A stretch of 64,000 nucleotides of DNA from Hemiscyllium ocellatum (taxonomy: Eukaryota). The notes under the pieces are model-generated. The model was not told the origin of the DNA. It made no database searches and was given only the letters and a program-made list of their open reading frames with translations. Positions 5,812 to 64,000 of this stretch are shown one piece after another (the stretch's first letter is position 1; each line of letters opens with the position of its first letter). The stretch spans positions 475,291 through 539,290 of the forward strand of contig NW_026867481.1 in assembly GCF_020745735.1 (NCBI RefSeq). Reading direction: 5' to 3'. The translations under genes and the position numbers were made by a program.

Positions 5812-6713
5812 CTAATTTGGCAACGATAGTGATCCTTTTCCAAACACGGTGCGGTCTGTCTCGTGGTATCACCTACTACTTACTGTCAATTGCAGTAACT
5901 GATTTCATTGTCATCATTGTCGCTGTCATAATCAATCGGATTGGGAGCATTTACTTTAGATACAGCCTTCTATCAACCACCCCTGGGTGCAGAATCAGCA
6001 CTGTTTTGGTCTATATCAGCCGGGACAGCTCCGTTTGGTTGACTGTTACATTCACCCTCGACCGTTTTGTTGCCATCTGCTGCCAGAGCCTGAAGACCAG
6101 ATACTGCAATGAGAAAATTGCGTCAGTCATCATAGGAATTGTCTGTCTACTGAGCTGTATCAAGAACGCCCCTTTCTTCTTTATCTACCAGCCCTTATAC
6201 ATTCTGGACGGGAAGCCCTGGTTCTGTGACTTAAAGTCCAGTTATTATACCTTGCCGGCCTGGAAGTGTTATCAATGGATGGACCACATGCTGACCCCCT
6301 TCCTCCCTTTCATCCTTATTCTCCTGTTCAACGCCCTGACTGTTAGACACATCATAGCAGCCAGCAGAGCACGGAAAAGACTTCGAGGTTCTGAGAATTC
6401 CAATGATGCTGAGTTGGCCAACCGCAACAAGTCCATTGTCTTGCTCTTCACAATTTCGCTCAGCTTTCTACTTCTCTGGGCCACCTACGTCGGACGATTC
6501 CTCTTCGTCCAGTTTACAGGAGAGGGTTATTTTGGCGGACTGGATTTTAATGATCCACAATTTATCCTTCAAGAAATGACCAACCTGCTTCAGTTATTCA
6601 GTTCTTGTAATAATGTATTCATCTATGCAGTGACCCAGACAAAGTTCCGACAGGATCTAATGAAGCTGCTGCTCTCTCCTTACACGTTCTTCAAACGTTT
6701 TATTAAACGATGA
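5812..6713 (+). CDS. Exon 2 of class A GPCR gene A; spliced product 323 aa, intact
   Basis: ttacag|CTAATTTG acceptor in phase with exon 1; 7-TM pattern, AVTD (TM2), DRF (DRY), WFC in ECL2, NNVFIY in TM7; no stops. Confidence 0.9.
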
Positions 6714-16699: not shown

Positions 16700-17689
16700 G
16701 CTGGCGAGCTAAGAAAGAAGCATGACGATTCCAGAAGGATCGCACAGTGAACAAAGAAATGACAGCTGGTATATAACGTTGAAAATGTGGGGTTTTGCAC
16801 TTTGATTTGAAGAATAAAGGCATGCACTGCATTCTAAAAGCTTTGGACATCTGAAGCACAAGCACGCATCGGTGCACTAGTTTAGGATTCTCCTCAAAGG
16901 AACGTGAAATTTCAGGAAGACGAATTCAACGTTTGCATTGCTTGGAAGAGGGCTGGAACACAATAACTGGGATGTAGTACAGACGCTGTATAATGCTCAG
17001 GTCAGACCGTATTGGAATATTGTGAACACTTTTGAGTTCTGTATCGCAGGAAGTATGTGATGGCCTTGCAAGAATTCCAATGTGGAGTGCAAAAATGATC
17101 TCGGGGATAAGAGCCTTGTCACACGAACAAATGTTTGAAGAATCTAGGTATTTAATCGAGGGAGATTAGAAAAATGAGATGGAACCTACCTTAAACTAAC
17201 AGAACATTGAGAGGCCAAGTTCGAATATTTTTAGAGAGGACTTTCTAATAGTAGGAAAGATTAGGAACTGAAGGCATAACATTTGAGTAAACGGGAGATG
17301 TTTCAGAAATGGGCTGTGGGGGAATGTATGGACCTCAATGTTGTAGAACGCTGTGCAGGCCAGATCACAAATCTCTTTACATCAGTGATAAATATGATGG
17401 CCGAATCACGTTGTGGTGCTTTTTTTCTGTCACACTATTAAGGGAGTACCTAAAAGGGGTGATTGAGAAGGAATTGAAGAGATTATTGCCCAACTTTCAA
17501 TCACAAATTGGCTGCGCTTTTTCCCATCTATTACAACTTTCATTTTCTGCCACAAAAGTGAAAAATAATGTTATGTAGCACTCGTTTTCCTCAACATCTG
17601 AGGATCTTGGGCCTTATATTACCAGGGTAAATATTGCAATGACAAAAAAGTACAATTCGGTAATTGATTGGATTACCCACACCTTTCCT

Positions 17690-20014: not shown

Positions 20015-20268
20015 NNNNNNNNNNNNNNNNNNNNNNNNNNNNNNNNNNNNNNNNNNNNNNNNNNNNNNNNNNNNNNNNNNNNNNNNNNNNNNNNNNNNNN
20101 NNNNNNNNNNNNNNNNNNNNNNNNNNNNNNNNNNNNNNNNNNNNNNNNNNNNNNNNNNNNNNNNNNNNNNNNNNNNNNNNNNNNNNNNNNNNNNNNNNNN
20201 NNNNNNNNNNNNNNNNNNNNNNNNNNNNNNNNNNNNNNNNNNNNNNNNNNNNNNNNNNNNNNNNNNNN
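20015..20268. other. Assembly gap
   Basis: Run of N. Confidence 1.
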
Positions 20269-22970
20269 ACACTTGCTTCCCTACCTCAGCAAAATTGGGC
20301 TCCACTCATACCTTTATTGAACAGGTAGATGATAAAATATCTGACTTCAACAAAGCATAAGTTTGGTATGAACAGAACATGACACAATGCGATTCAAGTA
20401 GGAAACATGCTGTTACAGGCAATCAGTGACCAACCTTGACATAATGTTCCTGACACTACTTCCAATTACGGATGTTTGTACAATTGTTTTCCAGTGAATT
20501 CACCCTTGCACCGAAAAATGAAAACTTCTAGGTGCAGGCAATGTACAGACTGCTAATCTTTGAGAAAACGGACTGCCATAACTTATAGGCTTTTCCTGTC
20601 TTGTACAAGTATGACAAATTGAGAGGTGATTTAATTGAATCAGATTCAATTGTGAAGTGGTACTTCAGGGTAGAGGCCACGGATGCTTGGTAGATTGACA
20701 ATCTGTTTTTTCACAATAACTGAATCATTTTTTTCGGCGCATATTGGGATGGTTGCATGACGGTGGGTGATCATCTATGATCCTACTCAATATTTCAAAA
20801 CGCTCGAAGCTTTGATCTCGAATGTTCGTGGTTCTTATGTTCATATAAAATTAATTGAATTTTTAACTGCCTGAGGGAAAGGTCATCAGCTGTGAATTGC
20901 ACCAAACTGAAATGCTTCAGCTGGCTGTGCTTTTTTTTATGGAAACTTGGACCCAAGAAATAATGTAAATTATGAGCTGGTGGATGTGCTTTAGAGATTG
21001 GGTCCAGAACATCTCAGAACCACTCGCTGAACAGAGCTTACAATGAAAAACATTTCTACACAGTGTTACGATGCGGCAGTGAATACTTCCGTTTATTAAA
21101 GCAAACACCCAAGCAAAGTTCAGCTCGTCTCATAACCTGTTAAAATGTGAGTGACAGATAACCACCAAATTCCACTAATTAAAGAAAATAAAGTGAATGT
21201 ATTCTTTAACTCTAAAAGTAAATATTTAACGATAAATTTTCACAACTCTAAGCACCCCTTTCACTTAACTGGTAATTACCAGCCTCCAAGTCCATGACAG
21301 TTTGCTGTTCCAATTAGAAACTCATGAAAATTACTTAAACTTGATTTCAAAATCACGCAGCGGCTGTCGTCTTCTTTGTCTATCTTCTTCTGGCTCAGGT
21401 CGTCTTCTTGCTCTTTTTACTGCGAAAATGTTTCACATGAAAAGGTACTTTTCGCAGTGAGTGTATCCAAATTTCTTGTATCTGTGTTGTTGGCAGTTGC
21501 TGTAACTGATTTTCAAATATCTGCCTTTTTACATCTTCTACAATGGACCATGTTATTGTTTAGATATTGGAAAAATAGCAAATTCAAACGCGGTTCGGAT
21601 TTAATGTTCTGGGGAACAATTTAAACAGGTTGGATAAATTGGAATTGTTGTCAAACCAGCAATCAACTCAGGTGTCTATTTCTCAGTAAAATGTTCCATA
21701 TTATCCATTTTCCAGGACACGTTCAGTCAGCTGGTTGGCATACACACAATTGTAAGTTCTCAAGTCAGTGCAACAATCACTCGTTCTTAAAGGTACAATT
21801 CATGCTTTCAAATTCATAAAAACGGAAATGCATGAACACGTGAATCTCGTTGAAATTTGGCATGACTGGAGAACACAAAATGAAAGACAAAGAAAAGAGT
21901 AGGAGGCACAGGGCCCCAAAGGCAATAATTTACTGTATATATATATCGTGATAAGTTCGAGTGGAGACGAAATATCTGTATCCTAGTTATGGATCAAATA
22001 AACTGTCCCAATGTGACAGATTGATTTTATGCAAAATTCGGACATTAGTACGTTCAGTGAACAAGGGAGAAAATCAGCCAATGGGTTATTGGCAATTGAA
22101 ATTATCAGAGATGCAGAAGAGGCACTTCTCAGTGAAGTGAGCAACGGTAATACCACAGTGGAATCTGCACAAACGGAAAACTACTAACAGTTCAGAACCT
22201 TAAAGAAATGTTCTCACACTGCTCAAACCACAAGTTCTATGACGTACGTGTAGGCAGAATACGAAACTTCATATGAAACTTGGAGCAAATGTAAAACCAA
22301 AATAAAAAATTCGTTCCTCTTGCTGCACGTAAGTTGTGAAATTGAATGTAAAACAAGCAGAAGCTCTTGTGATGTGTTCATTTCACAGAGAAGCTTTATG
22401 TTTCAGGAGTCAGGAGCACTAAACCTGTGCTTTCTACGGCATTTTCCTATTGCAGTGATGGAACACAAATAGGTTACTTGCACAATTTTTCGTTTGGGAA
22501 GTTGTTATCTTATTGGTCATCGAGTATTTCTTGACGTTTTTCTTTTTTACAAGGAAAATAGAAAAATAAGTTTCTTATCTTAGAATGAAAAGCATGGAGG
22601 AATTTTATTCATGCATGTTCCCACTCCAGCAACGTACAATCTCATTACTTCTGGTGCTTTGCTGCTCCGTCATATATTCACGTTCTTAGCCATCTTCATC
22701 ATTCGTTAAATTGCAGGTTGGAAGATATTGTTGAATCTACAAACACCCAAGTAAAAATTAAAAGTCAATTTTTCAGTCTGAATCATGTCACACGATTATC
22801 TGGTATTTGGAAGCCTGATAATCACGAATACAGAATGAATCCAGAAATAAAGAGGATTCTTCTATAAAATAGGAAGAAGCAAATTCACAATATAAAAATA
22901 ACCTGTAGATTCAGTTTGTTCAGCTTTATCCGTGCTTTTTATCAATGCCTACGTAACCACAACATGTTCG

Positions 22971-23189
22971 GGTTTTTGTACAGCTCTTTCCTTCCTCTGC
23001 ATCACTGTGTCTGTAATCTTCTCCCTATTCAGCTTTTGATACAGTTCTCTCACTACTATGCATTTTTGTGTCTGTGATCCTCATCCTGTTCAGGTTTTTG
23101 CACAACTCTTTCTGTCTCTGTATCACTGTGTCTGTAATCCTACCGTGATAAGATTTTGTACAGCTCGCTCCGTCCTTTGTTTCACTGTG
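22971..23189 (-). other. Tandem array of four 23-type recombination signal sequences (~60 bp period)
   Basis: Minus strand: RSS1 CACAGTG-23-ACAAAATCT (23189-23151); RSS2 CACAGTG-22-GCAAAAACC (23130-23093); RSS3 CACAAAA-23-ATCAAAAGC (23070-23032); RSS4 CACAGTG-23-ACAAAAACC (23009-22971). Confidence 0.9.
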
Positions 23190-23499
23190 CTTGCTGAGCG
23201 CCGACTCAGTGCACAGTAATACACGGCGGAGTCCCCCAGTTGCATTTTCGAGATCTTTAGCTGAATGACTTTTGTTGCAGAATTGATGGAAGCGGACAGT
23301 TTTCCCCCTGCAACATCATTTTGATTCTCCTCTTCTGAAGTGTGTCTCTGAAGTAGGTGTTTCAGAGCTTGACCAGTTGCCTGACTGTACCAATATACTG
23401 TGTAATGACAGAAGCCTGAATATTTCCAGCTTAAAGTAACAGTTTCGCCAGCAGTGGAGGTTTGTAAAGGTGGACTGTTAGACACCAGAGAACTGGAAT
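23190..23499 (-). CDS. Leaderless supporting TCR-delta V exon of NAR-TCR (first canonical Cys replaced by Trp)
   Basis: ttccatag| acceptor in phase 1 with the J donor; DSSSLVSNSPPLQTSTAGETVTLSWKYSGFCHYTVYWYSQ...DSAVYYCALSRRSA; extra CDR1 Cys; no leader exon seen; 23-RSS follows. Confidence 0.85.
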
Positions 23500-24979
23500 C
23501 TATGGAATTAAATGAGAAGTTTGTTTCATTACCATTATCAAGAAAACGTCTCATTGGTGAGCATAGCTCTGCTTTTAAAGCATTTCTTTTCTTTTGCAGC
23601 AAGTTCGATACTATAATTATCATCAAACTGAAACAGCGGGGAGATATCGACTTTTTTGGAAAATAGAACGCAAGTTGTTCCGCTCGGGAGTACATGACAA
23701 AATGACTCAAGAGTAACACTCAGACGGGAGTTAGGAGGTAAATATTGAAGGATTGAATAATTCCAAGAACAGGGGGAAATGACCTAGGAATGTTCACAAT
23801 TTGAAAGTAACTTGTAAGAATCTGCAGGAAGAAGATGGAAAGTATAATGAGATTCTGCTCTTTTTAATTCCTTGAGTTCAATTCAAAACTGAGCATAACA
23901 CACATATCAAAAATATTTTAAGAGTTAATTCGCCTTTTCACTGAAACAATTACTTTCAAAAGTAGTTGACTGAGAGAAAACCCGCAGTATGTGTTTGTGT
24001 TTGAGATCTGGAACTCTGCTGTCCAAATAAGAGCTCATTGCCCGTTCCTAATAACGCATTAATAGGTGGTCGTGAGGTGCCTCTCGAACTGCTGCATCTA
24101 CTGATTGCAAGTACAATCAAAATGCAGTTAAGGAGTAATTTTCAGGATATGACTGATCGACAATAAAAGAAGGAATCATATTTGTAAGTCAGGCTGGTGT
24201 TGGAACCTGCAGTTAGTAGTTCTCCCATGCATCCACTATCCACAGTCCACAGAAAGATTCAATTGAGTGTGGCTTGTTCCAATCTGACAGAGGTCGAATA
24301 GAATAACAAATAGACCGATCACAGTACAGAAGAATGTCATTTGACACGACATGCAGGTGTTACGTCTCTGCAAGAGAACGTCGTATTTGTGAATGAAACA
24401 AATGCTTTCACAGCTCCAATATAACTTCTCTGCTTTTATTAACTACGCCACAACGAATAAAAACAATTGCCACTTGTTCTTTATGAACCACCATTTTAAC
24501 TAATCTTTGCCTTAGGGACCTCTGGACAAGTATCCCCAGATACTTCCCTCACGTCACTCGTGCCAGTAGTCCATAAAGAATGCCTTATCTTGTTCCTTCT
24601 TCCATAGTACATCAAGTTCCATACCCTCTCTCTCGGTTTCTCTCTCTCTCTCTCTCATTCATGTGTGTATATTATTTATATATATATATGGAATAGGCGT
24701 TGCTGGCTTCGTTTATATTTGCTGACCATCTATCATTCCTCAGGAAGCAGTTCAGTCTCCTTGCTGTGAGTCTGGAGTTACATGTTGTGTAGACCAGGTA
24801 AGGGCAGCAGATATTTTTACCTAAAGTATATTTTCAGGTTTAGTTTCGATTTGCCACTGACTTGCCAATATGACCAAATCGTTTATAACTTCCTGAAACT
24901 TAAGTCCTTCTCCTTCACTGTTCGGCACTCAGAACTGATCCAAAAGACCATAATACCATAAGACAATGGAGCAGAATTT

Positions 24980-25800
24980 AGGGTATTCATCAGATGAATC
25001 TGCCCCACCAATCATTCATTCCAGGTAAGTTTCTGAATCCTATTCTCCCGCTCTCTTCCCATAATTATTGATCTTCTTTATACACAGCAAACTCTTTCAC
25101 TCACTCTTAGGTATTCCCAATAACCTGCCCTCCATGGCATTCCGTGGCAATTCATTGCATAGATTCAACTCTTTCTGGCTAAAGAACTTTTTCGTTATCT
25201 CATTTCCAAAAGCAATTCCCTTTACTCTAAGGCTATGCACTTGTGCCCTCGTCTCTCCAAACAATGGAAACATCTTCCCAACATCAAGCCTGTTCAGGCC
25301 ATTCAGTGCTTTGTATGATTCAATTAGGTTTTTCTCATCATTCTAAACTCAATCGAGTATCAACCCAGAGTCTTCAAATGTTCCTCAAATGTTAAACGTT
25401 TCTTTCCTAGGAATAGTATCGTAAACCTACTCTGAGCACGCTCGAGGCCCAGTACATCAGTCCTGAGATATGGGGTCCACAACTGGACACAATTGTCCAA
25501 ATGTGGTCAGACCAGTGCCTCTTGAGTACATCCCTGCATTTTTATTATTCAAGTGCTCTTAAAATAAATACCATTATTGCATTTGCCATCCTAACTGCAG
25601 CCTCAAACTGCGAGTTTGCATCTAGTGAATTCTGGACTAGGAATCACAAGTCATTTTGCATTTCTCATGATATGCCATTGGCCACCCAGCCTCCAGTCAC
25701 ATAAGCAATTTCCCAGGACTCAGCCAATATGGATACAAAATGTGAAGCTATTCCAGATGCCATGTCAATTTCGCATTGTTTGTCAGTGTCCCGAATGGGA
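24980..25800 (-). mobile_element. Decayed CR1-type LINE 3' fragment inside the J-V intron
   Basis: Reverse complement resembles the CR1 C-terminus (gatatggggtccacaactggacacaattgtccaaatgtggtcagacc). Confidence 0.6.
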
Positions 25801-26300
25801 TTGTTTCAACGATTTTCTGAAATCCATATCAACTCCATTAAGTCCAATTTACAATTCTACGTTCCCTGTCACCTCTTCAAAACAGTCAACCTATTTGATA
25901 TGACGGGCCTCAGTCAAAACCATATTAGCTATTCCAGATAAAAAAAAACTTGCCTCTCTGAGTAGAATGTATTTCTGTCATTCAGAATACTTTTCATTGT
26001 GGCACTCGATACTCTGCTGCTTCCTGGTATAGCCAAGCCATATCTCTTGAAAATTTGGCATGACACGAGCTGTCCTCTAGTCCTCTAGTACCTGTTCTGT
26101 TACCAGAGTGGAAGTACAAGTTATGGTCATTACTCTTTGATTTTCTTTCTCATTTCCCACTGCAGACTGGGATATAATTCATCCGGACCTTGGATTTCCT
26201 CTCTGACTTCACACATTGAAATGTCACTTATCTCAAAAATAAACTGAGTATGAGCATTAATTCAGACAGTCTGTAACAGAAGTCAGTTCGAGTCACTTAC

Positions 26301-26353
26301 CTGCTGTGACAGTCACCACGGTCCCGGATCCATCCACAGTACCGTATTTGCCA
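26301..26353 (-). CDS. NAR-TCR J segment
   Basis: GKYGTVDGSGTVVTVTA+G|gtaagt; IgNAR-type J end (xGxGTVVTV); upstream RSS. Confidence 0.9.
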
Positions 26354-26392
26354 CACAGTGACCACTCTCTTACTCAGCCCAGAACAATAACT
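26354..26392 (-). other. 23-RSS of the NAR-TCR J
   Basis: Plus strand CACAGTG (26354-60), 23-nt spacer, ACAATAACT (26384-92). Confidence 0.9.
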
Positions 26393-26694
26393 ACTGGAAG
26401 CTTATTCTGACAGCCACATGTTGCAAAACATTCCTCTCTGCCTCGAATTATTCAAAGGATTTCGATTACTTAATAATACTTCATATTTGTTGCATTCTAT
26501 TGATTCGAACAGTAATTTATGTTACTCTGGGATCTTAGCAAGGTGACCCAGGAACACTTCATGAAAATGGAGAAAATTGGCGCACAAAGATAATAGAAGA
26601 AGGAAATTTTGAGGATTTTTTTTTCCAAGGTCAACAAGTCTAATGCAGTCAATATACAATTGGGAGAGCAAACAATATGCTTTAATTGCACTGT

Positions 26695-26767
26695 GGTATT
26701 TGTTCAATTCTCATCCACTGTGGGTTCCAAATACTTGTACACAGTGTTTCAAGTCAACATTAAAACC
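26695..26767 (-). other. NAR-TCR D segment (17 nt, 26739-26723) flanked by two 12-RSS
   Basis: Minus strand GGTTTTAAT-12-CACTGTG | TACAAGTATTTGGAACC | CACAGTG-12-ACAAATACC; all three frames open (YKYLE, TSIWN, QVFGT). Confidence 0.9.
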
Positions 26768-27093
26768 TCAGGTACTTTCGATTTATGGAGAAAATAATTA
26801 AAAAGTGGAGACTGATTTTCAATTTTGCAGTTCGTAGCATTCAATCCTAATTTGTGCTTTGGACTCCAAACTGTGTTCACCTTTCCCAACATTCACACAT
26901 TGAGTCCAATCACAATAAAACAAATCAACATCTGTCAAAACTCAGCTGTTCCAAATTGCAGATGTTATTACCAATAAAACAGTAGCATTAGAAATAAGAA
27001 CATGGCGCAAATGGTGCAGGGGAGAAGAAAGTGTGTTGTTATCAACAGAACAACTGTACTTTTTCATTTGTTTTTGCGAAAATCTCGGTGGGT

Positions 27094-27132
27094 TGTTTTT
27101 GTATTGCACTTTTATTCGGCCGTCACTCTGTG
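27094..27132 (-). other. 23-RSS of the NAR-TCR V
   Basis: CACAGAG-23-ACAAAAACA. Confidence 0.9.
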
Positions 27133-27420
27133 TGTTGTCGTAGTAATGTGCTTTACAGTAATATGTGCCAGTGTCTTCAATTCTTACGTCCTGAATCTCC
27201 AGTGAAAAAGTCTTTTCTTCTTTAACCATCCGTACAACAAATCTCCCTCCGTTAAAGATCCGCATCCGCTCTGATCTGCCCTGGGTTTGCTTGAGAAAAT
27301 ATCCATCTTGGAAACGATAACCCCAGTTGTGACCGTAATAAACACAGGTGATGCTGAGAGACTGACATTCCTTCATGGTCACCACTGCCGGGGTTTGTGT
27401 CACCGACTGACTGAAAGCAC
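27133..27420 (-). CDS. NAR-TCR (IgNAR-like) V exon, open
   Basis: ttccag| acceptor; AFSQSVTQTPAVVTMKECQSLSITCVYYG...GYFLKQTQGRSERMRIFNGGRFVVRMVKEEKTFSLEIQDVRIEDTGTYYCKAHYYDN; short NAR-type domain, extra FR1 Cys. Confidence 0.9.
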
Positions 27421-27574
27421 CTGGAAATTAATCAAGGGGAAATTAGAAAATAATTCGACAAAGAAAAGCAAAAAAATAACGTTGCTAATCTGGCGTCTAT
27501 GTCAGCGAAAGGCATGTTCATGCGCAACATTATATTGATTGAAAGTAATGTCAGTTAATTTCATCAGTACTCAC

Positions 27575-27617
27575 AGGGTAGCCAGATATAGAGGATGAAA
27601 ATAATAAAGATTTCCAT
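27575..27617 (-). CDS. Leader exon of the NAR-TCR V
   Basis: MEIFIIFILYIWLP+T|gtgagt, 154-nt intron, phase 1 joins to give Cys. Confidence 0.9.
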
Positions 27618-28789: not shown

Positions 28790-31080
28790 TAATGCAAGTC
28801 AAAACCACTTGCATTGTTTCAACCCGCATAGTTTTGTAATCCGTCTGAAAGTTGAAAACCTGTCCTTCACGCTCAGCTGAGCAACAACGCTAGACTGATT
28901 TGCGGGAATGATTTCAGTCAAGTGATTGAACTGTCGGTTTGTGATAGTTTTGGGAATTGTGCCCACAACGTTGCAAAGTTTATAGTCGTCATGGAAAAGG
29001 ATAAGAATGGTGCAGATGTTGCAGATCGAAACTGGAGGAGAGCTAAGCTCAACATCATGAGACTGGAAATGGCAAACAAGACTGGGAGCAACCACTTGCT
29101 GGTAGGGCTGAATTTGGAATTTTGGAGATCTTTCAAAAGTAGTTTGATGAGAATTTTGGCACACTGTGCTCCTCTAAGAGTGGAGGGTAAGGGTAACATG
29201 TTCAGGGACCCCTGGATGCTAAGGGAAATCACTAGAGACAAAAAAAACCCTGCAGGTGCTGTAATCCAAAAGTAGAAAAGCAGGAGGCTGGAAAACACAG
29301 CAAGACAAGAGGAGGAGAAGAAAACCTTTCTGGGTATAACCCTTCTTTAGAACTCGGAGCGGGGTTGAATTCCGAAGAAAAGTTATACCCGAAGCATTGA
29401 CTTCCTCCAACTCTTGACGCTGCAAGAGATATAATTGCTTGTACAGCAGAAGAAGGAAGTATACATCAGTTCATTTTCATTTAAAAAAAAACTGATGAAA
29501 ATCCCTTCAGATACATATTTGTGTGCATGTCTGGTCACAGGTATCTTGCTAAAAAAAAGAAGTTGCGAGGACAAACAGGGTCGACAAAATATCTTTCGTA
29601 ATTCAGATCATGGAAGATCCCAAGGCATTTTGCACATCCATTAAGAGTAAGAGGAATTCCAATGAATGAGCGGTGCCTACTACAAATAATGGGACAATCT
29701 CTCCGTGGAACCAGTGGACGGGGTTAGGACTTAAACGACTACTTCTCAACCCTCTTGACGGGAAGGAAGACATTGTTGCTGGGAATTTCAGAAGTGATGC
29801 TGACTTTCTAGTAAACGTTGTGGTTTATGAATAAGAAGGGTACGAATTTATAAGCGACCATAAAGGTGCACAGGTTCCCAGGGCCTGACCATTTTCACCT
29901 CAGGCTGCCACGTGACTCAAGGAAAGAGTTTGCTGGGGAGTCTGGCGGATGGACTGAATATTTCCCTGGCCACAGGTGAAGTAACAGAAAATTGAATACT
30001 AGATAATGTGGTTCCTTTGATAAATAAAAGGAGGCGTAGTTAAGCAGAAAATTACAGGCCAGTTCGTCCGACGACAGTGGTGAAAAGATATTGAATAACC
30101 TCTGAGGGTGAATATTAATCCCATTTGGAAATGCAGGATTTGATCAGGGTAATTTGCACTGATTTGTTAGCAGAGACTATGTCCGATCAATTTAGTTGAG
30201 ATTTGTTTTTTGAAAAGCTGTCGAAATGTATTGAGGAAGCTACTGCAGTCGATGTGGTTTCCATGGACTTCAGTAAGGCATTTGACAAGATACTCACACG
30301 AAACGTTCGTATAAAAGACAAGAATCCATGATATGCAAGGCGAGGTGTCAAAGTAGATCTACCATTGAGTTGCAAAATAAGTTTAAAGGTAAAGGTGAAT
30401 CATTGTTTTATGACTGAAAGCTTGTGACCAAGGGCGTACCACGGGGATCGGTGCTGGTACCATTCCTCTTTGTTTGTACATTAACGACCTGTATTTGAAT
30501 GTAGAAGGCATAATAAGTGGATTAGCCGATGAAACGAAAATTGGTGATACTATTGATAGTTTTTTCATTGATATCGTACTCTTAAATTACAGTTTGATAT
30601 TGATACACTGATAAATTGGGCAGAACAACGCTATATCAAATTTAATCATGGTAAGTTCGAGATGATTGGTTTCGGAAGGTCGAATAAGGGAAGGATCGAC
30701 ACAATGGATGATAGGTTCAGAGGGAGTATTTAGGAACAAAGAGACGTTGGTCCACAAGTCCATAGATTACTGAAGAATTCAACACGGGGAGGCAGCATAG
30801 TGAAGAAAGAAAACAATATGCAAGTTTTATTTCACTGAGCGTGTAGAAACAACAGCCAGGAAGTCTTCTCAGAATTTTATACAAGAATGCTTAGCCCACA
30901 GATGTAGTAATATTGTCGTTCTGTTTGCCACACTATGGCAACGACTCAAAACACATTGGAAACGATATAAAGGAGATTCACCAGGAATTTGCCTGGGATG
31001 AAAAGCCTGATTTAGTGTGTTGTTTTCCTTTGAGCAAACAAACTGAAGGTCAAACACAATCACATTATAATTTCTATGAC
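28790..31080 (+). mobile_element. Decayed CR1-type LINE (EN end to RT/C-terminus)
   Basis: DSFGNCAHNVAKFIVVMEKDK; DVVSMDFSKAFDK; GVP.GSVL.P..F; many stops. Confidence 0.8.
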
Positions 31081-34879: not shown

Positions 34880-35009
34880 NNNNNNNNNNNNNNNNNNNNN
34901 NNNNNNNNNNNNNNNNNNNNNNNNNNNNNNNNNNNNNNNNNNNNNNNNNNNNNNNNNNNNNNNNNNNNNNNNNNNNNNNNNNNNNNNNNNNNNNNNNNNN
35001 NNNNNNNNN
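34880..35009. other. Assembly gap
   Basis: Run of N. Confidence 1.
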
Positions 35010-40550: not shown

Positions 40551-41138
40551 GGATCTGTAATTAAGTAGTGTGAGAGAGAAAAAAGTAGATGGGAAGAATC
40601 CATTTCTGTGTACAGAGAAGTACGTAATCAAGGTGCAGGCTCGAGAAAGGAAAATGCCTTTGTATTTATCTAATGCCTTTCACCACAATCTGAATTCAAA
40701 ATGCTTCACCGCCAGTTCCTGCCGTTTGAAGTGAAATCGGATGCAAACTCTTCCAAATGACTATATTTCTCTCCCTGCAGACATGCGCAGACCATATGTG
40801 CATTTCCAGCATTTTATTTGCATAGATTTGAATTTAGACTTTCAGATATCTGGTCGGCTTTTCTCTGTTTGTCGGGTTGACATTGATTTCCAGAATGTTG
40901 TCGTCCAAACGTTCGCTTTAAATGTGACGTTTCTCAAATTTCTCCTATGTGGAGCTCAATGTTTGACTTGTTCCATTGAAATGAAAACGTCCTGGTATAT
41001 TCGCTGACCTCCTCCAGAAGTCACAATTACAACTATGGGATCTGTGGTTCAAACATTAAAACAAAAGCAAAAAAAGAGAATGCTGGTGAAACTCACTAGA
41101 TATATCCCCTTCTCCTGGTTGGGTAATGTAAGAAACTA

Positions 41139-41228
41139 GGGCTTGTCCGCGATTTGAACCCGGGATCTCTCACACGCCCACGCATCAGGAGGCCCGAAGC
41201 GAAAATCATACCGCTATACCAACGAGCC
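41139..41228 (-). tRNA. Intron-containing tRNA-Pro(CGG)-like gene, probably a pseudogene
   Basis: GGCTCGTTGGTATAGCGGTATGATTTTCGCTTCGGG|CCTCCTGATGCGTGGGCG|TGTGAGAGATCCCGGGTTCAAATCGCGGACAAGCCC; 72+18 nt; mismatches in acceptor and T stems; no T4 terminator. Confidence 0.8.
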
Positions 41229-41247
41229 ACATTAATGTAAGAAGCTA

Positions 41248-41337
41248 GGGCTTGTCCGTGATTTGAACCCGGGATCTCTCACACGCCCACGTATCAGGAG
41301 GCCCGAAGCGAGAATCATACCGCTAGACCAACGAGCT
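41248..41337 (-). tRNA. Second intron-containing tRNA-Pro(CGG)-like copy, probably a pseudogene
   Basis: Same structure, 109 bp period; intron CCTCCTGATACGTGGGCG at position 37/38. Confidence 0.8.
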
Positions 41338-44682: not shown

Positions 44683-45593
44683 TCACTGCTGAAATTTTTT
44701 AACAAATGGATAGATTGTATATTTCAGACCATCCTTTAACTCAGCTCTGAATTTAGCCTGCGTTCCTGTATAAATGAACGGATTGATGCATGAACTGAAT
44801 AACTGAAGCATCATTCCAGTTTCTTGAAGAATAAACGTGGAATTAATAAAATCAGAACCAGAGGAGTACGTTACATGTGAAATTCGGACATAGAGGATGG
44901 TTGAAAAATACAACGAGTATAAAAGGATAAAACTGCCTGAAATGGCAAAGAGTAATACCATGGACTTTCTTCGCTTTTTCATCTCTGGGTCACATTGACT
45001 TTGTTCATTGCCTTGAACTCGGAGTCTTTTGCGAGCTCTGTTTGCTATTATGATGTGCCTGACAGTAAGGGCGTTGAGGAGCAAAATGAACATGAATGGA
45101 AGGAAAGGCGTTAAAATAGAACGAATCCAATCATATGCAGTCCATGCAGGTGATGTATAATATATTTCTTTTATGGCACAAAACCAGGGAATATTGTCAA
45201 TTATGTACTTAGGTTCGAACATAAAATACATAAAGATATTTTTTACACAGGTCAGTGTAGAGATGATTATTATGACTCTTGCTGCCACCTTTTCGGTGCA
45301 ATAAATTGCTTTCAACTTCTGGCAAGAAATGGCTATAAACCGATCAAATGTGAAGGCAACAGTAAACCAGGCAGAACTGTCAATGGCAGCAAAATTTAAG
45401 GCAGAGCGAAAACTGCACACTGGTGTGATAGACAGGACACTAAGTGGGAAATAAAGTCCAGCAATCCGGTTTAATATTACTGCAGTGATCATGACGAGGA
45501 GATCGGTTACTGCCATGGACACCAGGTAATATATTATGCAACGGGACAGACCACATCCTTTTCGAGACAGGATCACAATCACTGCCAAGTTAG
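44683..45593 (-). CDS. Exon 2 of class A GPCR gene B; spliced product 326 aa, intact
   Basis: tattacag|CTAACTTG acceptor; MAVTDLL, DRF, PWFC, INPFIY motifs; 7 TM; no stops. Confidence 0.9.
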
Positions 45594-53710: not shown

Positions 53711-56310
53711 CTAGAACATAGAACATAGAAAAATACAGCGCAGTACAGGCCCTTCGGCCCTCGATGTTGCGCCGACCGAAGCCTACCTAACCTACACTAG
53801 ACCAATAACCTCCATATGCTTATCCAATGACCGCTTAAATGACCATAAAGAGGGAGAGTCCACCACTGCTACTGGCAGGGCATTCCAAGAACTCACAACC
53901 CGCTGAGTAAAGAATCTACAGCTAACATCTGTCCTATACCTAACACCCCTTAATTTAAAGCTGTGTTCCCTAGTAACAGCTGACTCCATTAGCGGAAAAA
54001 GGTTCTCACTGTCAACCCTATCTAAACCCCTAATCATCTTGTACACCTCTATCAAATCTCCCCTAACCCTTCTTTTCTCCAATGAGAACAGCCCCAAATG
54101 CCTCAGCTTTTCCTCATACGATCTTCCTACCATGCCAGGCAACAACCTGGTAAACCTCCCCTGCACCCGTTCCAGTGCCTCCACATCCTTCCTATAGTAT
54201 GGCGACCAAAACTGCACACAATACTCCAGATGAGGCCGCACCAGTGTCTTATATAACTGCAACATGACCTCAGGACTGCGGAACTCAATTCCTCTACCAA
54301 TAAAGCCCAGTACAGCATATGCCTTCTTCACAGCACTATTTACCTGGGTGGCAACGTTCAGAGATCTGTGTACATGGACACCAAGATCCCTCTGCTCATC
54401 CACACTACCAAGTAGCCTACCATTAGCCAGTAATCCATCTTCTTGTTTCTCCTACCAAAGTGAATGACTTCACTCTAACCTACATTGAACTCCGTTTGCC
54501 ACCTTTCTGCCCAGCTCTGCAACTTATCTACCCCGCTGTAACCTGCCACAGCCTTCTTCACTGTCCACAACTCCACCGACTTTCGTGTCATCCGCAAACT
54601 TGCTCACCCAGTCTTCAAGCCCCTCCTCCACGTCATTTATAAAAATGACAAACAGCAATGGTCCCAAAACAGATCCTTGTGGAACACCGCTAGTAACTGC
54701 ACTCCCAGATGAACCTATACCATCAACTACTACCCTCTGTCTCCTTCCAGCCAGCCAATTCCTAATCCAAACCTCTAATGCACCTTCAATGGCATACCTC
54801 CGTTGTTTTTGCATTAGACTGCCATGGGATACCTTATCGAACGCCTTGATAAAATCCATATACACCACATCAACTGTTTTACCTTGGTCCACTTCCTTGG
54901 TCACCTTCTCAAAGAACTCAATAAGGTTTGTGATGCACGACCTGCCCTTCACAAAACCATGCTGACTATCCTTGATCACAGTATTCCTATCCAGATGTTC
55001 ATAAATCCTATCCCTTACAATTCTGTCTAAGACTTTGCCCACAACAGAAGTGAGACTCACTGGCCTAGGGTTACTAAGGCTATCCCTCCTCCCCTTCTTG
55101 AACAAGGGGACCACATTCGCTATCCTCCAGTCTTCTGGCACTATTCCCGTAGACAACGACGACATAAAAATCAAGGCCAATGGCTCCGCTATCTCCTCCC
55201 TAGCTTCCCAGAGGATCCTAGGATAAATGCCATCAGGTCCAGGGGACTTATCTATTTTCATCCTTTCCAGTATTCCCCAGACCTCTTCCCTACATACCTC
55301 AAGGCCATCCATTCTAATCAAGGCCATCCATTCTAATTTCACTTGTGACTCAATATTCACATCAGCAACAGTGTCCTGTTCCTGAGTGAATACTGATGAA
55401 AAGTATTGATTTAGTGTCTCTCCAATCTCCTCCACCTCCACGTACAACTTCCCACTACTATCCTTGACTGGACCGATACCTACCCTAATCATCCTTTTAT
55501 TCCTGACACACCTATAGAAAGCCTTTGGGTTTTCCTAATCCTACCAACTAATGACTTTTCATGTCCCCTTCTCGCTGCTCTTAGCTCTCTGTTTAGATCC
55601 TTCCTGGCTACCTTATAACTCTCAATCGCCCCAACTGAACCTTCACACCTCATCTTTACATAGGCCGCCCTCTTCCCTTTCACAAAGGATTCCAATTCCT
55701 ATTAAACCACGGCTCCCCTCACAAGACCCTTTACTCACTGCCTGAATGGTACATACTTATCAAGGACACCTATTAGCTGTTCCTTGAACAATCTCCACGT
55801 ATCATTTGTGTTCTTCCCTTGAAGCCTATTTTTCCAATCCACGCATCCTAAGCCATGCCTCACCGCATCATAATTTCCCTGCCCCCAGCTATAACTCTTG
55901 CCCTGCAGTGCACACTTATCCCTCTCCATCACTAGAGTAAAAGTCAACGAGTTGTGGTCACTGTCCACGAAGTGCTCACCTACCTCCAAGTCTATCACCT
56001 GACCTGGTTTATTACCTAGAACCAAATCCAGTATAGCCTCACCTCTTGTTGGCCTGTCTACATATTGTGTCAGGAAACCCTCCTGCACACATTTGACAAA
56101 CACCGACCCATCTAACGAACTCGAGCTATAGCTTTCCCAGTCAATATCTGGGAAGTTAAAGTCCCCCATAACAACCACCCTGCTGCTTTCACTCTTCCCC
56201 TGAATCATCCTCGCAATAATTTCCTCTACTTCTCTCGGACTATGAGGAGGCCTGTAGAAAACTCCTAACAGGGTGACCTCACCTTTCCTATTTCTAACCT
56301 CAGCCTGCGC
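53711..56310 (-). mobile_element. Young CR1-type LINE (HER1-like), ORF2 EN-RT broken by a few frameshifts
   Basis: VVVMGDFNFPDIDW (EN); [29 protein letters not shown] (RT); C-terminal LRPHLEYCVQFWSP; (gaacata)n tail. Confidence 0.95.
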
Positions 56311-61091: not shown

Positions 61092-61104
61092 NNNNNNNNN
61101 NNNN
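61092..61104. other. Assembly gap
   Basis: Run of N. Confidence 1.
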
Positions 61105-61888: not shown

Positions 61889-62619
61889 GATGAGAAAAAT
61901 AAGAATATACTGATAATTAAGACAGAGCAACATCTATCATTCAAATAATTTGCGTTTGATCCTGGGAAAATCGAATTCGATTCGGACATTAGGAGACTCA
62001 CCCTCGTGTTCGAATGCTGTCCGTGTTTGCAGTGCTTTTTGTGGTGGTACATATTTCTCCAGTTGAGTGTCAGTGATGCAGGTAGTGAACGCTTCTGCAT
62101 ACAGTACACATCAAACTGACTGTATTTTACGAGATGATATCGTTTTTCTTGAGTCCTATTGGAGCTTTACACATCCACGATATTTCATTAGCCATGACCG
62201 GAACAAAATGATCATATGAAATGGCAGAGCAGGCTCGAGGTTAAAGTGTCGTTCTATGTTGCTAAATTTAACGTTCATTTTTGATTTGATGTTTGAACCC
62301 GAAGGCACATTCTCCAGCTGAAAAAGATGCCATCAAAAATTAATATAATAACAGAGACTTGAAAAGATGGGATCTCGCTCTCCAGAAAACGTGGAACCAG
62401 GACAATACTGAAAAGAAATAGTTTTAACTATTACACGGTTTAAGTGAAATAAATTCGGAAATTCGAATTGGTGCATGACTCCACGACAAAGGCCTATCCA
62501 TATCGAAGCACACTAAAATAACAACTAGAGATATCAAGAAAGATGCACTCATACAAAAACACACTGGAACCGAATAGAACCATTGACATCTGAAATGGGT
62601 AAAACTTGGAAAACACAGA

Positions 62620-63075
62620 ACGGAGAAAGTCATAAGTGGGTTTATGACTCCAACTGTTAACATATGCTAATGTTAGCAGAGCGAAGGCCATGTGAGGAAA
62701 CGTCAGGCCCTATTAAGTTAGTCACATATGCAGTAACTTCTTCGAAGCTCGTGTACAACATGAAATTCAGAGAATGAGGTCCAGAAAATATTGGACAGAA
62801 TCAAACAATAGTTTCGAGGAAATTTAAGTTGTCAGAGACGCTGAAGAGACAATTCCTCAGAGTAACAGGAAAGCCACAGTGAACCTGCATAAAGTGAAAC
62901 CAACTGACAACTGAGAGACTTTGGGACAACCTCTCTGTACAAACAACAGAAATGTATTTGTGGAAAGAAAATGAAATCGATTGTGATAATTGTAATTAAT
63001 TTGAAAACGATAAAGTCGAGCTCTGCAATGGCCAAAAATAAACAAAAAGTGGAAAACGACAGAACATTTTTGCTT
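62620..63075 (-). pseudogene. Possible decayed V relic
   Basis: gtttgtacag| acceptor; GFPVTLRNCLFSVSD...*FCPIFSGPHSLNFMLY...QLES; hydrophobic leader-like ATG segment upstream; no RSS. Confidence 0.35.
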
Positions 63076-63760: not shown

Positions 63761-63952
63761 TTCTTTTGTACGGCTCTTTTCGTGTTCTGTATCACTTTGT
63801 CAGTAATCGAACAATGTTCTGGTTTTTATACGGTTCCTTCCATGCCCTGTATGACTGCATTTGTTTTCCCTCCATGTTCACGTTTTCATACCACCCTACC
63901 AACCAAATGTTCAGGATATTGTACAGCTGTATCCATGATCTGTATCACTTTA
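63761..63952 (-). other. Decayed tandem 23-RSS array (second ladder)
   Basis: Plus strand ttcttttgt-23-cactttg (63761-99), ggtttttat-23-gactgca (63821-59), ggatattgt-23-cacttta (63914-52); spacers resemble those at 22971-23189; CAC destroyed in all three. Confidence 0.75.
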
Positions 63953-64000
63953 AGAACTGTACACCGACTTCTTGCAGAATCTCTCAGTTATATTTCGGAG
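63953..64000 (-). pseudogene. 3' end of a V pseudogene running off the window
   Basis: SEI*LRDSARSRCTV aligns with SKMQLGDSAVYYCAL and abuts an RSS. Confidence 0.6.

Follow-up and report, generated by a model that had tools for sequence, protein, structure and literature searches.

The recombination signal that follows a V segment is canonically a 23-RSS, composed of the heptamer CACAGTG, a 23-nt spacer and the nonamer ACAAAAACC, and the CAC at the start of the heptamer is needed by RAG. One such signal per V segment is the normal arrangement, and V pseudogenes with degenerate signals are common in all antigen-receptor loci. The NAR-TCR of sharks is a doubly rearranging TCR-delta, and full-text searches gave no description of tandem signals behind its supporting V-delta, in a coverage of the literature that was partial and does not establish their absence. 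The window analyzed here, a 64,000-nucleotide stretch of Hemiscyllium ocellatum DNA (scaffold JAJGRY010000100.1 of GCA_020745735.1, with runs of N at 20015–20268, 34880–35009 and 61092–61104), carries such tandem signals twice, once intact and once decayed. We put the probability at about 85% that the decayed copy is the 3′ end of a dead NAR-TCR cassette, consisting of the tail of a supporting-V pseudogene and an inherited five-unit array of 23-type signals that drifts neutrally, selection in live cassettes being limited to the V tail and to signal 1 or signals 1 and 2. The units resemble a canonical 23-RSS behind a V in heptamer, 23-nt spacer, A-rich nonamer (which in the dead copy matches ACAAAAACC to varying degrees) and orientation, but where a V normally has a single signal, five of them follow one another at a spacing of about 60 nt, and the heptamers of the dead copy all lack the CAC start. 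V pseudogenes with degenerate signals likewise combine a disabled V with a mutated signal drifting alongside it; the three other such pseudogenes of the window have at most one degenerate signal, whereas the dead copy has a whole array.

The intact copy belongs to a complete live cassette (23190–27600) in which a NAR-type V (27418–27137, minus strand) that has one 23-RSS of its own, a D between 12-RSSs near 26722–26740 and a J are followed by a live supporting V-delta (23500–23190, minus strand) with a V-set domain (Pfam E 1.4e-11). The intact ladder lies directly behind this V at 23189–22950 (minus strand), with units starting at 23189, 23130, 23070 and 23009; the heptamer is CACAGTG in units 1, 2 and 4 and CACAAAA in unit 3, and below 22950 comes a fifth, decayed unit. 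In a protein word search the 198-aa read-through ORF of the live V gave a match, being 100% identical to XP_060677554.1 of Hemiscyllium ocellatum, while the bare 104-aa supporting V gave none because the annotated products are longer. NCBI gene models (P0001–P0007 and P0009; window 23123–23189) run the V exon through signal 1 into the ladder, one product ending in ...SRRSASTVKQRTERAVQNLITVGLQTQ, and since the exon is read on through the signal, such annotated C-termini are translated recombination signals, an annotation artefact. In the rearranged products P0008 and P0011 the join comes directly after the CAL(S/G)RR tail, which fits use of the V-adjacent signal 1. Another model, P0062 (gene LOC132807343), lies beyond the window end on the same scaffold and is a near-identical duplicate of the window's live cassette (96–99% at the protein level); the model covers 50 kb and begins with a conventional V whose signal is read through. 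By sequence P0062 belongs to this duplicate live cassette further on and not to the dead one, and the dead cassette would sit between two recent duplicates of the live cassette.

Seven further cassettes were compared, namely L001, L002, L005, L007 and L008 from H. ocellatum, L004 from Chiloscyllium plagiosum and L006 from Mustelus asterias, which together with the window's own provide eight live supporting V-deltas, L007 being a near-duplicate among them. Aligned to L005, L007 and L008, the last 48 nt of the window (64000–63953, minus strand), the only visible portion of a V that continues beyond base 64000, where its splice acceptor and the NAR J, D and V would also lie, correspond to the end of FR3 and the germline CDR3 of a supporting V-delta. 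The translation reads SEI*LRDSARSRCTV. The in-frame stop is a TAA at 63990–63988 where the relatives have CAA, and a 15-nt in-frame deletion at about 63977/63976, with TGC microhomology at its edges, has removed the VYYC(A) codons, so that in the multiple alignment DSA-----RSRCTV of the dead copy stands opposite DSAVYYCARSRQSA of L005. The initial annotation of this DNA had rightly recognized a V-like 3′ end with a stop, which proves homologous to supporting-V tails, but the C that it lists, that of SRC, is not the conserved V cysteine: the framework cysteine codon lies within the 15-nt deletion relative to the live relatives. Given the alignment to the L005 supporting V, the deletion and the TAA for CAA, the dead V is a supporting-type pseudogene whose reading frame carries a stop and has lost the codon of the conserved cysteine. 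The tail is homologous to that of the supporting V in annotated Hemiscyllium cassettes (DSA...SR..).

Directly behind this tail, remnants of five units of a heptamer-23-nonamer repeat of about 60 nt can be read on the minus strand. D1 (63952–63914), the ortholog of unit 1 and thus of the V-adjacent signal, has the heptamer TAAAGTG (63952–63946), a 23-nt spacer and the nonamer ACAATATCC (63922–63914). Unit 2 survives as a truncated remnant (63913–63860) from which a 26-nt deletion has taken the whole heptamer together with portions of linker 1 and of the spacer, leaving the nonamer remnant ATGAAAACG at 63889–63881. D2 (63859–63821), the ortholog of unit 3, and D3 (63799–63761), the ortholog of unit 4, both retain the 23-nt spacer, with the heptamer TGCAGTC (63859–63853) and ATAAAAACC in the former and the heptamer CAAAGTG (63799–63793) and ACAAAAGAA in the latter. 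In D4 (63736–63705), the ortholog of unit 5, the heptamer AATAGTG (63736–63730) is separated from TCAAAATTT by a spacer of 16 nt. The initial annotation covered 63761–64000, a range that D4 partly leaves, and had counted three nonamer-23-heptamer units after the V; these are real (D1–D3), but the remnants number five in all. Heptamers start at 63952, 63859, 63799 and 63736, in steps of 93 (two units minus the 26-nt deletion), 60 and 63, and the dead copy thus displays the architecture of a ladder, with head-to-tail units of about 60 nt joined by linkers of about 21 nt and beginning at the V border. From the first unit to the fifth, the nonamers match ACAAAAACC at 7/9, 6/9, 8/9, 6/9 and 5/9 positions. 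Not one of the remnants retains the CAC that RAG needs, in agreement with the earlier statement that every heptamer had lost it, and judged by its sequence the dead array is therefore predicted to be inert, with RAG unable to cut at D1–D4.

A loose scan gives 76 RSS-like matches in the window, isolated matches of this kind being common, and the likeness could be held to be a chance product of A-rich sequence. An nhmmer profile built from four good units of the intact ladder nevertheless matched the window at 63857–63801 (E 1.2e-5), 63949–63904 (E 1.9e-5) and 63796–63757 (E 0.009), and found nothing else credible in the 64 kb, where the next best match had E 0.23. Matches at the 1e-5 level fall on units that immediately follow a V tail and are correct in strand, order and spacing, the sequence is collinear with live cassettes over 900 nt, and an alignment of ten units displays the pattern common to intact and dead ones. 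Chance likeness is refuted by the profile E-values and by the collinearity, and its probability is close to nil.

A ladder of three to five units is present behind all eight live supporting V-deltas examined, as well as in the dead copy, and in about 280 kb of sequence (the window and the compared loci) the unit profile matched solely behind supporting Vs, the dead one included. Within this sequence ladders are confined to one V class and are not placed at random with respect to it. Neither the NAR V nor the three conventional V pseudogenes of the window (at about 11.1, 34.0 and 56.7 kb) is followed by a ladder in the window search or with the profile. Both earlier statements on this point, that the leader-bearing V pseudogenes lack a ladder and that the ladder is an inherited part of one V lineage, are borne out. 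The dead array agrees with the ladders of the live supporting V-deltas in unit, period and place, and in number of units with those of L005 and L007; it differs from the live ladders by its decay: unit 2 has lost its heptamer to a deletion, and cleavage is predicted for none of the units. The heptamer of unit 2 is intact in seven of the eight live ladders. Other live units deviate as well: unit 4 reads TGCCGTG in L001, units 2 and 4 read CAGAGTG and AATAGTA in L008, unit 3 is CACAAAA in three live cassettes, and unit 5 is dead in all live ladders. A NAR-type V pseudogene with stop codons was observed at 16950–17216 of L001, 8 kb upstream of the live cassette, and no recognizable supporting V or ladder follows it.

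The closest relatives of the dead copy are not in the window. L005 and L007 are the genes LOC132808244 and LOC132814080, both live and both on other scaffolds. The dead stretch gives a local alignment of 508 nt with L005 and blastn matches of about 800 nt with L005 and L007, and overall its V 3′ end and downstream DNA are collinear with these known supporting-V cassettes over about 900 nt. The multiple alignment with L005 and L007 is in register throughout, with D1 at unit 1, the truncated remnant at unit 2, and D2, D3 and D4 at units 3, 4 and 5. Beyond the array the downstream flank (63704–63080, about 600 nt, minus strand) continues collinear with L005 and L007 and in part with L008, and at 31% divergence it served as a neutral yardstick. 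This shared flank and the shared register indicate that the dead ladder was inherited by cassette duplication. The AATAGTG and the 16-nt spacer of D4 recur in live L005 and L007, so that the loss of D4 predates both the split from these lineages and the death of the cassette.

It could also be supposed that the stretch is a decayed local duplicate of the neighboring intact ladder, which lies 41 kb away on the same strand, has units of the same style and shares one short collinear downstream block (62793–62909 versus 22066–22189, 69.6% identity). The best local alignment between the dead stretch and the neighbor's ladder, however, extends over only about 84 nt, against the 500–900 nt obtained with L005 and L007, with which all five units are in register and the flank is shared. 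On alignment length, register and flank the neighbor's ladder is rejected as the ancestor of the dead one, and a local duplication is most improbable. The proposal that the dead copy is a natural control for the intact ladder 41 kb away has to be given up as well: the two belong to different subfamilies that split anciently, and the dead copy is a poor control for its neighbor. It is instead a control for the ladder of L005 and L007.

A second sample of H. ocellatum yielded a single contig over 62001–64000 with 17 differences, and a related species yielded an orthologous contig of about 93% identity (141 differences and 19 gaps); two read sets have contigs that go on beyond the end of the window, for 1.5 kb and 3.2 kb. 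An assembly artefact is thereby excluded, and the dead ladder is older than the species split. This comparison covers genome contigs, which show no joint at the units and have no bearing on expression or rearrangement. Homology, register of the units, the disabling lesions and the equality of rates are observed, whereas the timing of the cassette's death is inferred, as is the failure of RAG to cut these units. Under the favored reading, duplication of a whole cassette would have carried the array along, which would have been neither built anew nor copied from the neighbor 41 kb away; the V would then have been disabled by the stop codon and the loss of the conserved cysteine, after which V tail, signals, spacers and flank would have drifted at one neutral rate.

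Rates were compared by counting lineage-specific changes in a three-lineage alignment of the dead copy, L005 and L008. Flank distances are 0.31 between the dead copy and L005, 0.35 between the dead copy and L008 and 0.33 between L005 and L008, and as the tree in the flank is nearly a star, a change unique to one lineage can be assigned to its branch. Counts are given in the order dead copy, L005, L008; they are small and derive from one dead copy in one alignment, in which the region of unit 2 is ambiguous owing to the deletion. Unique changes number 46, 39 and 52 in the flank, 12, 16 and 18 in the spacers, 9, 1 and 5 in the V tail, and 14, 4 and 16 over all heptamer and nonamer sites, the last divided into 7, 2 and 3 in the signals of units 1–2 and 7, 2 and 13 in those of units 3–5. 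On the dead branch the rate of change is 0.18 in the signals, 0.19 in the V tail and 0.14 in spacers and flank together, which do not differ detectably (p ~0.4): the dead branch drifts at the neutral rate in all four. The V tail of live L005 is constrained, with 1 change in 48 sites (p 0.02), and its signals are marginally so, with 4 changes in 78 sites (0.05) against a neutral 0.13 (p 0.055). Among five deep live lineages, identity in signals and in spacers/linkers is 81% and 67% in unit 1, 82% and 66% in unit 2, 59% and 58% in unit 3, and 67% and 61% in unit 4, figures that are descriptive only, as the lineage pairs are not independent.

These numbers bear on the proposal of the initial annotation that the whole ladder is under selection in working cassettes and lost when they die, which would make the dead copy a clean negative control. 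Signals changed 14 times on the dead branch and 4 times in L005 while spacers and flank together changed 58 and 55 times (Fisher p 0.043), the signals of units 1–2 are better kept than spacers among live lineages, and the unit 2 heptamer, so widely intact in live ladders, is deleted in the dead copy. The asymmetry weakens to p 0.086 when unit 1 is left out and only distal units are counted, and live L008 has accumulated more signal changes than the dead copy (16, of which 13 are in units 3–5). There is no excess conservation in units 3–4; the CAC of unit 4 is lost in live L001, and CACAAAA occupies unit 3 in three live cassettes. The loss of D4 is ancestral and common to live copies, and the dead ladder and the neighbor's intact ladder represent different subfamilies. 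Selection on the entire ladder is accordingly unlikely. Of the dictum that a working cassette keeps its ladder and a dead one loses it, what holds concerns at most the first two units (81–82% identity versus 66–67% in spacers/linkers); it fails for the distal units, which are dead in live ladders too. The comparison indicates that in live cassettes selection preserves the V tail and signal 1 or signals 1 and 2, and that the distal units drift alike in live and dead copies. Gene conversion, and not selection, could be what keeps unit 2 more conserved than expected in live cassettes.

The CAC positions themselves depart from this neutral picture. In units 1, 3 and 4, five of nine CAC sites changed on the dead branch against an expected rate of 0.14 (binomial p 0.004, post hoc), compared with one of twelve sites among the last four bases of the same heptamers (Fisher p 0.046); with the caution due to small counts and a post hoc test, the excess is more than simple neutral drift predicts. 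It might mean that the signals of dead cassettes are disabled faster than neutrally, whether because RAG cutting at a V without use is selected against or because germline RAG activity damages the heptamer border, and such a process would fit the recurrence of a CA-to-TG change, which opens the heptamer both in L001 unit 4 and in D2. The test was, however, applied to the very feature that had drawn attention, and its counts are tiny. One of the five changes is recent, as the first heptamer base of D1 is C in contigs of two related species, which still read CAAAGTG. Units 2 and 4 of live L008 have lost CAC as well, and taken over all signal sites the dead branch changes at the neutral rate. RAG damage would be expected in the coding flank, since the rejoining of signal ends is as a rule precise. 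Directed inactivation of the dead signals is unlikely, and disabling at more than the neutral rate has in our estimate a small probability. The CA-to-TG change at the first two heptamer bases was observed in two independent units, at 28991–28997 of L001 (unit 4, TGCCGTG) and at 63859–63853 (D2, TGCAGTC); the L001 instance belongs to a cluster, with three changes in a span of five bases.

We return to the reading of an inherited array that drifts neutrally behind a dead supporting V. Viewed alone, the stretch is a pseudogene relic of an ordinary kind. As a member of the same sequence family it offers a neutral baseline for asking whether the extra signals act, valid against its true relatives L005, L007 and L008 and not against the neighbor. 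Measured in this way, a five-step ladder in use is argued against, and functional hypotheses are narrowed to signal 2. A tentative and on balance unlikely suggestion is that signal 2 (and in certain subfamilies possibly signal 3) is a functional spare that selection maintains in live cassettes, a second way to cut the supporting V that might rescue a failed first join or provide an alternative, longer V end. If so, the dead copy, with the unit 2 heptamer deleted and unit 1 mutated, would show the consequence of an end to that selection, and the supporting V would be the first V segment of any antigen receptor to carry more than one signal under selection.

A 12-RSS-like element, with a nonamer-like sequence, a spacer of 11–12 nt and CACTGTG, was observed about 0.75–0.8 kb downstream of both ladders within the 69.6%-identity collinear block (62875–62901 and 22154–22181, minus-strand reading). 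It faces the V, as the signal of a D or J would; it is present in L001 and L003, weakened in L004, and absent from L005, L007, L006 and L008, and several further contigs from the read sets contain the block 62879–62933. The element was rejected as a D or J segment, given that it has no FGXG motif and no convincing 3′ signal and is absent from those four cassettes. In the same region, an exact look-up of the ORF at 62427–62663 matched no record, and 62208–62240 is a very high-copy repeat, where summed contig depth reaches thousands in three species, with numerous loose ends to either side. Two copies of a 109-nt unit with 95% identity at 41124–41336 look tRNA-derived, and ARAGORN (bacterial settings) found no tRNA anywhere in the window. 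A LINE remnant at 53792–56208 (minus strand), whose ORFs carry RVT_1 (E 3e-26) and Exo_endo_phos_2, adjoins the V pseudogene at about 56.7–56.95 kb. Two intronless ORFs of about 300 aa at 5817–6713 (plus strand) and 44683–45588 (minus strand) match Pfam 7tm_1 (E 2e-21 and 7e-19, respectively), and these rhodopsin-family 7TM frames among the TCR V segments may be chemoreceptor-type genes.
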